From: Saccostrea cucullata
Taxonomy: Eukaryota
Direction of reading: 5' to 3'
Assembly (NCBI RefSeq): GCF_032062105.1
Contig: NW_026940780.1
Coordinates: 1 to 64,000, forward strand
Length of the DNA stretch: 64,000 nt
Shown: one piece after another, positions 7,656 to 20,972 of the stretch
Layout: each line of letters starts with the position of its first letter
How positions within the stretch are numbered: the stretch's first letter is position 1
The notes under the pieces: model-generated
Seen by the model: the letters and a program-made list of their open reading frames with translations, nothing else
The model's database searches: none
Told to the model about the DNA's origin: nothing
Translations under genes and position numbers: made by a program

Positions 7656-8587
7656 ATGAAGCACTGGATAATAAGTTGTTTAATTATATTATTCCTTCAG
7701 CTTGATTTAAAGGTGAGGACTTCTTATTTTCCTTTTTTGTTTTCTTTGAAGTTCAAGTTCATTTCTTATTTCTTTGCGTCATTCGACTCATCAGGTTACA
7801 TAATACATTTACTAAACATATATACAATAATAAAAAAAACAATATGATAGTGAGCATACTCCGTAATCAATAAATAGCAAGTTAACTACATTGTATGTAT
7901 AGGATGTGCTTTCACAGGCATTCGTTATTATGAAACACTTTTAAAAAACTACAAATGATTTATTCTTGTAATGGAAAACTGATATAGATTATAAGGTTAT
8001 ATAGTTTTTAAACACTGGGTTTCCCATAGTAATATATTTCTTTTAAATATTCAATTTGAGATAAATTAAAATGATAAAAAGGACATTTTTCATGAGTTAT
8101 ATCATTTAGCAAATTCCTTCATCGTAAACTAATTATCTCTTCAATGTTACATGTAACTGTAATATTTGCTACAATGTACTTATAATTGATTCTTCATTGA
8201 AAATATTTTTACCGTACATTTAATAATTTTTTTTATTTTATCTAAAAGGCTTCATTTTAGTATTTTTTTCATAGATCGTTCTTACATCTTAATTTTAACT
8301 TTAGCTAAACGTCTTCGTGTATGAACTTCTGTGCTTTGAGAAAAGTTAACAATCTAGAAAATAATTCCTAACTGGGAGAAAATGAACTAATTACGTATGT
8401 GTAGTAAACTGTCTGAGGTTTAAGCTTGTAATTTATTATTTATTCCTATGTGATGATGTTTACCAGTTTACTATAAAAATAAATATTCTATTGGAAGTTT
8501 TGTGTGGAAGATTTCTATATACCTAAATACGACAATTTTTTTTTTCAGTTTGTAAAATGCTATCAAATTTCAATATATACAACAGTA

Positions 8588-8622
<35 letters not shown>

Positions 8623-17600: not shown

Positions 17601-20600
17601 TAGTTATCGTATGTTAACTTGAAAAAAAAAATGCAAGAAATGTTTTATTGACTATTTTAAGGACGGAATCCAGCTGGTATGCCGATTTCTGAAGATACTG
17701 CAACGGACACTAGCTGTAAGTATATTTTCTGTTTCTCATGGAATAGATGTGTGATTGAAAAAAAAAAGGAAAATTATGCGCATATTATAATCTGTCAATT
17801 TATAATTAAATTGTAATTTGGAGTATATGCATAATTAAGTACAACCTGTAGTTGTCACATCTCTAAACCATGCAGCGATATTTAATAGAAAAATATAGAA
17901 AAGTCAAATATATAGAGATAACAGACAGTCACTGTATTCAAAAGCCATTTAAAAAATAAAAATTTGGAGCATATCAACCAAGGACCTCCAAAATGTTAGA
18001 GGTGGGATCGGGTGCCATGGTGGAGTGAGTATCCGGGTAATTATGCACCGTTGCATGCCTGTTTATTATCAACAATATGTGATTTTACCAAATATTGAAG
18101 ATATATGAAAATACTAGTATGTTTGTGAGTACATTTCAAAGAAAGGCAATGACTCTGAGCTTATTAGAGCATAAAATCTTACACTTTTAACCATTGTATT
18201 GCATACATTTTACATAAAGATAAATTGCATATAATGTAGCATATTAATAACGTTCAAATATGGTTCGGAAATGCAATTCCTCACAATATTATAATTTTGA
18301 TAAATATTTGACATTTTGCAGTATTAGTTATGCAAAAAGATGAAGAGACCTTGGCGGAAGAAAACTTAGGTATGCAAAGCAATTACTCAGAGTATTTATC
18401 TTGAAAATTTCGAAGTTGGTAAAACACTTAGAATCTTAAAATCCAAAGCAATGAAACTCAAACTATAATAAATTGATTTTCAGAAGACACTAAGAAATAC
18501 CTGAGAAATTACAAAATCTTCGACAAATATTATGAAGAGACTGGCATGTATAAAAAAGCAAAACAACTTATTGAGAAAAATGGTGTAGTTATCATAATTG
18601 GCCCTCCAGGGTGTGGAAAAACAAACGCCGCTGTTCATCTAATGCTCATGTACGCTCAGAAAAAAGAAAATTGGGATTTACGCAAAATATCTGCACACAA
18701 GGATTTTTCTTTTGTAAAATTTTCAGAGAAAAAAAGCACATTATTTTTCATTGACAATTTATCTTTCGAAAATTCGTTTTTCTACGAAATAGAGGAATGG
18801 TGGAAGAAACTAGATGACATCTATAATAATCATATTAAAAGATTCAAAGGAACAAATGGAATGCATAAAGAAGGAAAAGTCCAATTATTGATAACTGCAA
18901 GAAGTAGTGTAATTGAAAAAGCACGCAAGTCTATGAAATGGACTCCTCCAGTTTTTAAGGAAGATTTTATTATTGATGTAGCTATTTCCCCTGCATTAAG
19001 CGAAACTGAACGGAAAATTATATGCATTACGGACGAAGAAAAGGAAAGAATTTTCAAAAGACAATTAGACTTTGCAAAACAACAGCTACATCTAGATTTT
19101 CAGTCATGTGATGAGAAGTTTATGAAGGAAATAAAATTAGCAAAAGGCCCGATTGGATTTCCACTCTGTGCCCATTTATATGCCTGCAAAAAGGAGTATA
19201 GGAAAAGGGGATCTCGTTTTTTTACCCATCCGATTGATATCCTCAGAATGCAGATAGAAAAAGAGATAGAATCTGACTCCAGCAACAGGACAAGAACCGT
19301 GTTTTTCCTTGTACTCCTGTATGAATGGCATTTGAAAACAAAGGATAGTCACGAAAGACTAAATATAGGAAATTCTGAATCATGCAAAAAATTTTTAAAG
19401 ATGATATCGAAAGATATTTTAGATCAGTTTAGTAATTTGAATTTTAATCAATTGGAAACCACAGGAAAAAGATTAGCAGGTGCTTTTCTGCGAGAAATGG
19501 AAGTTGGAGAGTCCATTTTCAGATTTACTCATGATAGTGTATTTGATGCCGTTGGTACTTATTTTTGTGACAAGTATTTCAAGCAAACTGTTCAATGGTT
19601 TCCATTAGAGGTACTACTAAATCAAGAATTCCTGTCATTAAGCGAAGAAAAATGTCACATTTTAGCATTGCGATTATTGTATGAGGCATTTAATCAAAAG
19701 TTAGCACAAATATTCAGCTGCAGTGCATTTCGAGAAGAATCATTCGTAGACACTTTTATGAAAGAACTATCGAAAAGAAAACAAAATATGATTGCAATGT
19801 TTTTCAACTTAAATGACGACAGTACTCATCCAGGATTGCCCGTCACATTTTGGTCCGCCAAAAACAATCTCTATTATCTAACATATAAGATGCTCAGCAT
19901 GATCAATGATAAGACACCTGACTATGAATCCCACTTGTTCATGTCATTTCTTGGAGAATGTGCTTCAAGAAATGAAAATCTACTGACAAAAATAAAATCA
20001 AATATAAAAGAAAACAGGGATGAATTGAAAAGTACAGTAGGCAGATTTAATGATGATAATGGCGACTCAATATTGCATATTATCATCGAATCTCCTCGAC
20101 GGGATGAAGACGCATGTGAATTAATCAAAACTCTTATTAAAACAAAAGGAGTAAATATTAACCATCGAAATGGGAAAAATGTTACTCCAGTTATGAAAGC
20201 CGTTAGATGTACTATAAAGAGAACGAAATTAATCGAGGAACTTGTTAAAGCAAATGCTCATATGAAATATAAAGACGCAGATGGATCAACGGTTTTCCAC
20301 CACTGTTTGAGCTCAGAAAACGACGATCAAATATGTTCAGAAACTATAACGTTACTATTAGAATCAAAAACAATGAAAAAAATTAATACAGACGACAATA
20401 AAGGTGAAACTCCTCTTAATATTGCAGCAAAACAACATCGATACAGCAGAATTTTAAGTATATTAGCGTTGTTGAAAAGTGATGAAATAACAACAGATAC
20501 CTCTAATTTGGATGGATATTCTCCTATACAAAACACCCTGTTAAACCTGCATGGTGACGATGCTATAATTGCACTAGAACGTTGTACTAGACTTGCAATT

Positions 20601-20972
20601 TTTGTTGTGTTTGGGGTGAACCCTGAACATCAAGCAGATGAGAAGGAATCTTCCAATGAAGGAATTGAATACGAAAAAGAAGACAGAGGAGTTGGATCAG
20701 AAGGTAAAGAGAGCAAACCGAAAGACAAGGGTAAAAAGGCCATCGATATGTGCAGACAACTAGAGCTAGAATATGAAGAGGCAATTTTGTCATGTGCTAA
20801 AGATCAAGATGAAATGGCAAGTGTTCTGGAAAATATACTTAATGCCGTAAACAAGAAACAAACATCAGGCGAAGAATATGACGTAAAAAATCCTGGGAAC
20901 AAACTCTCAGAAAAATTATTAGGGAAAATAAAAGAAGCAGCTAAAATACTGGCACATAAGAAATTTGAATAA
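7656..20972 (+). CDS. Predicted single-pass receptor: signal peptide, 10-Cys ectodomain, TM, micro-exon linker, STAND (nSTAND3-like) NTPase, ankyrin repeats; copy B1, ~1160 aa
   Basis: Phase-consistent GT-AG exons: 7656-7712, 8658-8895, 9102-9218, 9693-9783, 9884-9981 (TM GEIGGVVVLIFVVICGVVAGILFIFV then RRRKSK), 10549-10605, 10791-10823, 12395-12412 (uncertain), 12546-12602, 12820-12846, 13062-13106, 13736-13789, 17662-17715, 18322-18369, 18484-20972. No in-frame stop. The gap at 14003-14141 could hide more exons. Joining is inferred, not shown by RNA. Confidence 0.78.
8591..8618. repeat. (GA)n microsatellite
   Basis: Uninterrupted GA run in intron 1 of B1. Confidence 0.9.
10907..12258 (+). 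mobile_element. Decayed full-length mariner transposon (~1.35 kb)
   Basis: TA-flanked imperfect TIRs GAGGGCTGTTCAATAAATAATGTCC / GGACATTATTTATTGAACAGCC. Remnant at ~11957-12010 (HYLPDL..PFDLFLLPNLK) matches the mariner YSPDLAP.D..LF motif. Many frameshifts. Confidence 0.82.
14003..14141. other. Assembly gap (139 N)
   Basis: Run of N. A ~42-bp direct duplication (~14197-14281) follows shortly after. Confidence 1.
14323..17142. mobile_element. Non-autonomous DNA transposon with long, internally repetitive TIRs (CCGG termini) and nested inserts
   Basis: Left CCGGTGTAACGTTGAATATTGACCTGAGTTGAAAATTGACCCGGGGGTCATTTTTCAACGTTGAATA is mirrored by right TATTCAACGTTGAAAAATGACCCCCGGGTCAATTTTCAACCCGGGTCAAAATTCAACGTTACACCGG. 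No transposase ORF. Confidence 0.82.
16282..16507. mobile_element. TA-flanked MITE nested in the 14.3-17.1 kb element
   Basis: TA|CCGTATAAGTGGAAATTTTAGCGAG ... CTCGCTAAAATTCTACTTATACGG, with repeated TTTTAGCGA units. It interrupts an array of GGTGATATCACC-like palindromes. Confidence 0.8.
18484..20972 (+). CDS. Terminal exon of B1: STAND NTPase, winged helix and ankyrin repeats
   Basis: Walker A GPPGCGKT (18600-18623), Walker B LFFIDN (18741-18758), sensor-1 LLITAR, GxP motif IGFPLCA, WH motif FRFTHDSV (19524-19535). Ankyrin-like repeats GDSILHII, NVTPVMKAV, GSTVFHHC, GETPLNIAA, GYSPIQ. Acceptor ttttcag at 18483 is in frame with the 808-aa ORF. Confidence 0.92.

Follow-up and report, generated by a model that had tools for sequence, protein, structure and literature searches.

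Organization of the locus

The sequence analyzed (the window) comprised the first 64 kb of Saccostrea cucullata contig NW_026940780.1. It contains two paralogous genes, B1 and B2, oppositely oriented partner genes, an assembly gap and two inserted elements, and C1q genes are neighbors of the locus. These features, apart from the exons of B1, are as follows.

3255-4520, minus strand: partner gene A, head-to-head with B1; 5′ end not fixed
14003-14141, no strand: assembly gap of 139 N, within B1 intron 12 (13790-17661)
14323-17142, no strand: 2.8-kb terminal-inverted-repeat element in B1 intron 12, with 71-nt arms that are 94% complementary
22321-24000, minus strand: partner gene B, in head-to-head orientation to B2, with an approximate 5′ end
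31394-50607, plus strand: paralog B2, 13 exons, 1026 aa, B1-like architecture, no N gap
37042-47025, no strand: 10-kb element within B2 intron 11, with terminal inverted repeats of ~850 bp
52465-56300, minus strand: partner gene C; the 5′ end is approximate, and no B gene follows within the window

Partner gene A has Cys-rich/EGF-like exons, a stalk, a TM segment and a tail with an ITIM-like V-x-Y-x-x-L motif, an arrangement that recurs in the close relatives L004, L005, L006 and L009. Head-to-head pairs were counted eight times in two genera; since these eight probably come from one tandem array, the linkage may have been inherited rather than selected. The literature searched yielded no account of a head-to-head partner that is an EGF-like receptor with an ITIM-like motif, and no paper that names any of six of these genes' LOC identifiers.

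The exons of B1, all on the plus strand, are listed below.

7656-7712: exon 1, start codon and signal-peptide core, ending in phase 0
8658-8895: exon 2, ectodomain part 1, six Cys, two N-glycosylation sequons
9102-9218: exon 3, ectodomain part 2, three Cys, one sequon
9693-9783: exon 4, tenth Cys and Thr-rich stalk
9884-9981: exon 5, one TM helix followed by the basic stop-transfer sequence RRRKSK
10549-10605: exon 6, a linker cassette whose ESMHLV lies ~17 aa below the TM, at the site of [DE]xxxL[LI] in relatives
10791-13789: exons 7-12, phase 1-1 linker cassettes, each one predicted only
10791-10823, 12546-12602 and 12820-12846: exons 7-9
13062-13106, 13555-13593 and 13736-13789: exons 10-12
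17662-17715: exon 13, equivalent of the relatives' 51-nt "T-D-K-Y" exon
18322-18369: exon 14, the 48-nt "EEN" exon, which comes before the NTPase exon in the close relatives L004, L005, L006 and L009
18484-20972: exon 15, nSTAND3 NBD, HD1, WHD, helical arm, ankyrins and C-terminal helices

A sequence-only reading of this DNA had proposed that a stop-free chain of GT-AG exons leads from a signal peptide to the NTPase open-reading frame at a phase-1 acceptor, and spliced translation bore this out, giving 15 exons and 3504 nt that encode 1167 aa with no internal stops. AG/GT ends were present at all 15 exons, and the phases run 0-0, 0-1, 1-1, 1-2 and 2-1, followed by nine 1-1 cassettes and the 2489-nt NTPase exon, which is entered in phase 1. 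The parts are, in order, a signal peptide, a 10-Cys ectodomain, a TM helix, a 138-aa linker of cassette exons, an nSTAND3 NTPase and ankyrin repeats. The signal-peptide exon, matched in position in relatives L006 and L009, has a hydrophobic core with a hydropathy of 3.0 over 11 aa. The ectodomain with 10 Cys (6 + 3 + 1) and the TM exon with RRRKSK were as first read, the helix having a mean hydropathy of 3.37 over 19 aa, and no second TM-like stretch was present in exon 15 (best hydropathy 1.77).

Two extra exon candidates, at 10494-10501 (8 nt) and 11639-11679 (41 nt), were left out as they broke the frame. An acceptor with an immediate stop and AATAAA at 11229 is strong, yet unremarkable, since 28 of 75 intronic acceptor-like sites resemble it. 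Exon 12 is weakly similar to the exon preceding the "T-D-K-Y" exon of relatives, a likeness that was not used as support, and each of the small linker exons 7-12 is, by itself, an uncertain prediction. The reading frame does not cross the assembly gap, because the gap sits between a phase-1 donor and a phase-1 acceptor. Both gap flanks match a single repeat of the S. echinata locus L004 (21539-21613 and 21668-21822) in the same order and orientation, so that by sequence the 139 N most likely lie inside a repeat copy; a hidden exon within them is conceivable.

Evidence for a single B1 protein

In all 13 full-length relatives (1017-1111 aa), every part is found in a single open-reading frame, and the join in B1 was accepted because of this, phase agreement being weak evidence (~1 in 3). 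Twelve Logan ORFs of intronless length carry the fused architecture, and three Logan contigs are intronless at positions where genomes have introns. Fused RefSeq models are available from three other oysters, C. virginica, C. gigas and O. edulis; no genomic record was found for two C. virginica models. The syntenic Ostrea edulis gene is fused and gap-free with the exon layout of B1, and the gene order there (C1q, partner, B, partner, B) is the same as in S. cucullata. B2, which had been put forward as an argument against a chance join, serves that purpose: it is gap-free and carries the same architecture over 1026 aa, and its NTPase exon is 33% identical to that of B1.

The NCBI model of B2 stops at a 292-aa product through read-through of the exon 8 donor, and two paralogs are split by NCBI into 229/239-aa genes and ~811-aa genes; both splits coincide with one conserved GC-AG intron between in-frame phase-1 exons. 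For one paralog, L008, the 10 kb upstream contain no head exon. Neither a transcript nor an NTPase product of B1 was found, nor a called gene for its 808-aa NTPase ORF, and short head-only isoforms may occur alongside the long form. We conclude with high confidence that B1 is one gene encoding a type-I membrane protein, in which an ectodomain and TM helix are joined to a STAND-ankyrin module.

The NTPase and ankyrin module

Pfam models confirmed the STAND NTPase and ankyrins that had been recognized by eye in the last exon of B1, with nSTAND3 (PF20720) at E 9e-20 and 71.4 bits (cut-off 27.2; 62.5 bits for B2) and Ank_2 at E 2e-10. NACHT scored 16.3 bits, under its cut-off of 26.7, and no Pfam match to NB-ARC or LRR was obtained for B1. 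The earlier description as "NLR-like" is therefore apt only in a loose sense, since nSTAND3 and ankyrins are present in place of NACHT/NB-ARC and LRRs. The ankyrins are backed by Pfam, a PDB sequence search and Foldseek, whose matches include NLRP5-containing complexes and SAMD9 ranked below ankyrin proteins. The NTPase also matches the PADLOC model PDC-S73 (E 4e-13), and its predicted structure has a helical/winged layout (pLDDT 86). The elements of the switch, on the plus strand, are located as follows.

18600-18623: Walker A, GPPGCGKT
18744-18758: Walker B, FFIDN
18888-18902: sensor-1 Arg motif, LITAR
19155-19166: GxP of helical domain 1, GFP
19524-19538: winged helix with the conserved His, FTHD
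about 20046-20621: ankyrin repeats

An alignment of 88 sequences showed that the three Gly and the Lys of Walker A, the Walker B Asp, the Gly and Pro of GxP and the WHD His are invariant (88/88 each), that the sensor Arg is kept in 78/88, and that Asn takes the second Walker B position in 87/88 (hhhhDN). Judged by sequence motifs, the STAND set is complete in B1 (Walker A/B, sensor-1 Arg, GxP, WHD His and repeats), and nucleotide-dependent oligomerization would be expected of it as a member of this class. No N-terminal death-fold, TIR or coiled-coil effector was detected, in agreement with the first reading: the linker consists of 8-18 aa low-complexity cassettes, and in full-length relatives Pfam reports only nSTAND3 and ankyrins.

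The ectodomain and linker

The ectodomain exons had no Pfam match, and a PDB sequence search with an ectodomain profile gave none. The predicted structure is of high confidence (pLDDT 95), and a Foldseek search of it against PDB and BFVD returned nothing below E 2, with TM-scores ≤0.25, so that the predicted fold is apparently undescribed. The head belongs to a family of 1248 clusters at 50% identity, in which it is attached to short, AIG1 GTPase, HSP70-like, NHL-propeller-like or STAND tails, and heads have been exchanged between STAND paralogs; neither TRADD-N nor DED was present in the 48 members scanned. No account of the ectodomain fold, the head swapping or the other tails was found in the literature searched. 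Variable sites make up 7.6% of the ectodomain, 7.4% of the NBD and 8.3% of the ankyrin region, and no hypervariable stretch turned up when the head and the ankyrins were screened for one. This similarity of ectodomain and NBD is unlike the expectation for a ligand binder in an arms race.

The linker is 36-154 aa long and 31-58% charged among relatives. It is more polymorphic than any other region, and close variants differ by a 35-aa skip. An acidic dileucine motif, [DE]xxxL[LI], occurs in the linkers of 10 of 13 relatives, compared with 1.7 expected from shuffled sequences, and its usual place is 16-23 aa below the TM; the ESMHLV of B1 is a weaker LV variant. The literature searched held no account of such a motif below the TM. 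Since the linker is floppy and alternatively spliced, a direct conformational coupling is hard to envisage, be the signal outside-in or inside-out, and clustering is left as the plausible link across the membrane.

Proposed mechanism and alternatives

We tentatively favor the view that B1 is a membrane-tethered, endocytosed STAND sensor that signals in trans by clustering. The head, TM helix and acidic dileucine motif would place the switch on plasma, endocytic or phagocytic membranes. Characterized STAND proteins are held closed and are freed through their C-terminal region; the switch of B1 would remain shut until its arm and ankyrins encounter a cue in the cytosol, which may be a microbial protein at the membrane or the altered tail of a neighboring receptor, for example that of the head-to-head partner. 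ATP binding would then drive oligomerization. Because B1 has no effector domain, the output would arise in trans, as clustered membrane anchors may gather receptors with signaling tails, whether the partner with its Tyr motif or relatives that bear death domains. Evidence against a tethered sensor is that the ankyrin region is not hypervariable, that B1 has the LV variant of the motif, and that one head is found on many tails and swapped between paralogs, as ligand-binding heads are.

It is quite possible that B1 works instead from the outside in, with an extracellular or lumenal ligand clustering the heads until the tethered STAND modules reach assembly concentration and the ankyrins or C-terminal helices recruit downstream proteins. 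One head family with varied tails looks like a receptor family with varied outputs, within which heads are exchanged between STAND paralogs; assembly of the nSTAND3 protein Avs5 is concentration-dependent (PMC11897194), and Kaur et al. interpreted the related receptors that they listed as responding to external stimuli (PMC8195603). However, characterized STANDs are shut and released via the C-terminal region (PMC11897194), the head is no more variable than the NTPase, and a floppy linker would couple the two sides weakly.

An unlikely third reading is a non-signaling scaffold, in which the family-wide Asp-Asn Walker B makes a module that binds nucleotide and hydrolyzes it poorly, and this module, which would be no immune switch, forms a lattice on the membrane constitutively and serves adhesion or sorting. 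The near-invariant hhhhDN and the lack of any hypervariable region are consistent with this, and an immune role is inferred only from domain kinship and the C1q neighbors; however, the switch retains its sensor Arg, GxP and WHD His, and immune families typically show large expansions with shuffling. In Avs5, too, just one Walker B residue is acidic, and that protein nonetheless works as a switch (bioRxiv 10.1101/2025.07.08.663546). Finally, that the join is a prediction artefact, from separate transcripts or a B1 disabled by something within the gap, is very improbable, as the NCBI products and splits, the headless L008, the missing B1 product and the 11229 acceptor are set against splits at a conserved in-frame intron, the commonness of such acceptors, the fused, gap-free O. 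edulis gene and a B1 that keeps an open 828-codon exon with all motifs.

Wider significance

Paired NLRs of plants form a divergent two-gene unit kept through duplications. The B1 pairs resemble such head-to-head units (PMC9528088) in layout, with the difference that the partner is an EGF-like TM receptor with Tyr motifs and not an NLR. A speculative and rather doubtful extension of the tethered-sensor model is that oysters possess a paired two-gene immune unit, in which the anchored STAND guards, or signals via, the divergent EGF-like receptor with its ITIM-like tail on endocytic membranes. If this is true, the STAND is one output option of a large receptor family with swappable heads, and animals would have their own equivalent of paired or guard NLRs, divided between two membrane proteins so that the effector comes in trans. 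A widespread oyster family with a surface domain and TM in the effector slot makes STAND signaling without a cis effector testable, as well as whether a STAND can be switched from outside the cell. The ectodomain family is itself abundant (over 1200 clusters), with a predicted fold that has no PDB match, and the genes are candidates for studies of disease resistance in oysters; in current annotation they are often split or left uncharacterized.

Comparison with known systems

To our knowledge, STAND switches are almost only soluble sensors with their own effector domain. No functional test of the B1 architecture was found in the literature searched. Animal NLRs and fungal NACHT/NB-ARC-ankyrin NLRs share with B1 the order NBD-HD1-WHD-arm-repeat, but differ in NTPase clade, in its type-I topology and in its absence of an effector; the NACHT/NB-ARC, C-terminal LRR and N-terminal effector of strict NLRs are all absent. 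Anthozoan transmembrane NLRs, which carry 3-5 N-terminal TM helices on an NLR core (PMC5094078), are like B1 in having a STAND-type module with a membrane-attached N-terminus, but no folded ectodomain is described in the part of that account considered here, whereas B1 has a single TM and an nSTAND3 core. Bacterial Avs5 (AVAST type 5), an anti-phage protein, shares the nSTAND3 core with its single acidic Walker B residue (bioRxiv 10.1101/2025.07.08.663546) and a C-terminal repeat region; it depends on its C-terminal sensor and on ATP binding, and it acts through assembly of its N-terminal module (PMC11897194). It is soluble with an N-terminal SIR2 NADase, where B1 has a membrane anchor and ectodomain.

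The closest system is that of Kaur et al. (2021), who described Crassostrea virginica proteins with a Cys-rich ectodomain, TM, alpha-helical region, TRADD-N, nSTAND3 and ankyrins, and sibling proteins with HSP70, AIG GTPase or beta-propeller tails (PMC8195603). B1 likewise has a signal peptide, a Cys-rich ectodomain and a TM, and one of the listed proteins, XP_022297444.1 (LOC111106874, 2660 aa), also combines a Cys-rich extracellular region and TM with nSTAND3 and ankyrins. The B1 type is ~1000-1170 aa long with a disordered linker and, compared with the Kaur proteins as known from their descriptions, is without DED, alpha-helical region and TRADD-N; no DED/alpha-rich or TRADD-N segment lies below the TM in B1, whose linker accommodates no folded domain, and Pfam found none in the full-length relatives. 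The same sibling tails are also found on the head family studied here, which suggests no more than kinship with the Kaur receptors. The architecture of B1 is thus not new in kind, being a variant without the Kaur adaptors, and its build recurs across oysters, a close variant having been noted in 2021.

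Predicted structure of the B1 and B2 genes

7656-20972 (+): B1, predicted gene of 15 exons
31394-50607: B2, paralog of B1, 13 exons, 1026 aa, built as B1 is and gap-free

The candidate membrane-receptor STAND feature at B1 is real and well supported by comparison with related sequences. Database searches were run exon by exon and the reading frame was verified by scripted phase arithmetic. The stop-free chain of GT-AG exons proposed in the sequence-only reading was borne out, with 15 exons bounded by AG/GT, no internal stops and a product of 1167 aa, as was the claim of the same architecture in B2. 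The signal peptide, 10-Cys ectodomain and TM also claimed for B1 are all encoded in this predicted chain, which runs from a signal-peptide exon through three ectodomain exons, over which the 10 Cys and three N-glycosylation sequons are spread, to a TM exon with RRRKSK at its end, a 138-aa linker made up of nine phase 1-1 cassettes, and an 828-codon exon. The NTPase exons of B1 and B2 are 33% identical.

Within B1, an internal duplication is suspected by eye between 10549-10823 (exons 6-7) and 12546-12846 (exons 8-9), in each of which a 57-nt exon with similar ends is followed by a short acidic exon. Exon-like, frame-shifting segments with good splice sites, each running from phase 1 to 0, lie at 10494-10501 (8 nt) and 11639-11679 (41 nt) and could serve as poison or alternative exons. 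The O. edulis relative P0471 lacks a B1 insertion of ~30 aa (20640-20730), acidic and modelled at low confidence, that separates the ankyrins from the C-terminal helices.

Evidence for the join of head and NTPase

Since no B1 transcript was found in the sequence databases, the case for joining the Cys-rich head to the NTPase rests on relatives. In 13 of these (1017-1111 aa), head, TM, linker, NTPase and ankyrins all lie within a single ORF; 12 came from Logan contigs of 3.2-4.5 kb, and the three contigs examined have no introns at positions where the genomes have them, suggesting that the contigs are cDNA. Fused RefSeq models are present in C. virginica (LOC111105635, LOC111104129), C. gigas (LOC117690889) and Ostrea edulis (LOC125673613), and the gap-free O. 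edulis locus L009 has a matching exon layout and the order C1q, partner, B, partner, B found in the window, the partner being a minus-strand receptor gene. A false join would accord with the NCBI annotation, in which the B2 model stops at 292 aa via read-through of a weak donor and two Saccostrea paralogs are divided into separate gene models, and with an S. cucullata paralog (L008 10001-12528), annotated as NTPase only, that has neither head exon nor partner within 10 kb upstream. Both paralog splits, however, coincide with one GC-AG intron that two Saccostrea species share (L005 9824-9859, L006 9830-9865) and that lies between in-frame exons, and are therefore read as annotation effects; the L008 paralog is possibly a soluble member. 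Judged against these related genes, the join in B1 is very likely real.

Assembly gap and repeat elements

14323-17142: 2.8-kb inverted-repeat element within intron 12 of B1; smaller elements of the same kind are nested in it at ~16282-16506 and ~16547-16912
37042-47025: 10-kb element in B2 intron 11, with ~850-bp terminal inverted repeats and nested repeats inside

The run of 139 N at 14003-14141 lies in B1 intron 12, whose donor (13789) and acceptor (17662) are both in phase 1, and adjoins the 2.8-kb element. Both gap flanks match one repeat of the S. echinata locus L004, in the same order and ~55 bases apart, which argues for continuity inside one repeat copy. An exon may be concealed in the gap; since linker cassettes are optional among relatives, as seen in a skip of 35 aa between P0055 and P0418, it would matter only if it carried a stop or shifted the frame. 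In the 10-kb element, a tRNA-like stretch (38553-38680), with a tRNA arm set readable by eye on both strands, is probably a SINE head.

The NTPase switch and the head family

The STAND motif set of the B1 NTPase is intact. In the 88 sequences compared, the Gly and Lys residues of Walker A, the Asp of Walker B, GxP and the winged-helix His never vary; 78 retain the sensor Arg, and 87 have Asn as the second Walker B residue. The predicted structure (pLDDT 86) comprises an NBD, helical domain, winged helix, arm, ankyrins and a C-terminal helical cap, and Foldseek with this model returned ankyrin proteins at the top, followed by NLRP5-containing complexes and SAMD9. In Pfam, the 828-codon exon of B1 matched nSTAND3 at E 9e-20 and ankyrin at E 2e-10, with NACHT below its cut-off. 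The description "NLR-like" thus holds for the layout, B1 being an NLR-type switch in its predicted working, but not for NLR status in the strict sense.

The head family forms 1248 clusters at 50% identity. A TM is present in 103 of its best 149 members, whose tails have a median length of 75 aa; matches to the NTPase or ankyrins occur in 7, a count to be read knowing that many may be split models. The same head carries different tails in P0154, P0250, P0263, P0168 and P0242, including an AIG1 GTPase (Pfam E 2e-64), HSP70-like or NHL-propeller-like tails (by eye) and several unclassified; P0168 heads a well-represented family bearing an unclassified 360-aa tail. The ectodomain fold, predicted on the relative P0053 in place of B1, was confident (pLDDT 95) and had no structural match in PDB or BFVD. 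By its head P0092 groups with P0055 (99/98), but the NTPase tree places it with P0034/P0087 (100/100), and STAND-bearing heads are dispersed through the family tree (at least three forced changes, in a tree on few columns), indicating from tree comparison that heads are swapped among STAND paralogs. Hypervariability of head or ankyrins was sought among close variants and was absent (variable sites: head 7.6%, ankyrins 8.3%, NBD 7.4%, linker 21%). P0162 and P0170 lack the P-loop, the head (plus TM in P0170) running on into the post-Walker or ankyrin part; they may be decoys that naturally have no NTPase, or errors in the models.

Linker sorting motif and partner genes

433-786 (-): C1q-domain exon at the left end
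2546-2953 (+): C1q-domain exon, facing away from the first and 80% identical to the C1q gene in the corresponding position of O. edulis L009

Clathrin adaptors recognise acidic dileucine motifs, which steer proteins into endocytosis or endolysosomal sorting. Such a motif was found in 10 of 13 linkers, compared to 1.7 in composition-matched shuffles, a contrast among related sequences that carries no strict probability. It lies mostly 16-23 aa below the TM, where B1 has the variant ESMHLV and B2 has ERLAML. Each B gene points away from its minus-strand partner, an EGF-like, single-TM receptor whose tail retains V/I-x-Y-x-x-L. Eight head-to-head pairs occur in Saccostrea and Ostrea (two in the window, four in L004-L006, two in L009), with one partner copy in L004 and the L008 paralog as exceptions, and probably derive from one old tandem array.

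Proposed signalling mechanism

The topology elements, the disordered and variable linker, the dileucine enrichment and the head-to-head pairing can be read from the sequences, and the whole account of how B1 would signal is one that we infer. The disordered linker argues against direct conformational coupling, so that the two sides of the membrane most plausibly communicate by clustering. We tentatively favour a membrane-tethered sensor, in which the C-terminal region would sense a cue at the plasma membrane or an endocytic one, the module would assemble on ATP binding, and the clustered anchors would draw together signalling receptors in trans. This scheme is patterned on the working of Avs5, a bacterial anti-phage protein and the single nSTAND3 type found characterised in the literature searched (bioRxiv 10.1101/2025.07.08.663546; PMC11897194), and is in keeping with the unremarkable variability of the head. 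Close behind, and still a serious possibility, is outside-in clustering by way of the head, which would suit the variety of tails on one head family and the exchange of heads between paralogs. A constitutive scaffold is less likely than either, and a false join of head and NTPase is very improbable.

Comparison with known systems

In C. virginica, Kaur et al. described ~50 proteins in which a Cys-rich ectodomain, TM, DED and TRADD-N precede variable modules, STAND NTPases and ankyrins among them; one locus in their supplement combines nSTAND3 with ankyrin, and nSTAND3 was defined there from these bivalve proteins (2021; PMC8195603). Unlike that family, B1 has no TRADD-N. Membrane-attached NLRs with 3-5 TMs are described in sea anemones (PMC5094078). 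In the literature searched, which was poor in subscription papers, we found no description of the form without adaptors, of its fold or sorting motif, or of the partner pairing. The receptor-like STAND architecture is thus already noted in oysters, and B1, in its predicted structure, is a variant of it that offers several new handles for testing function.
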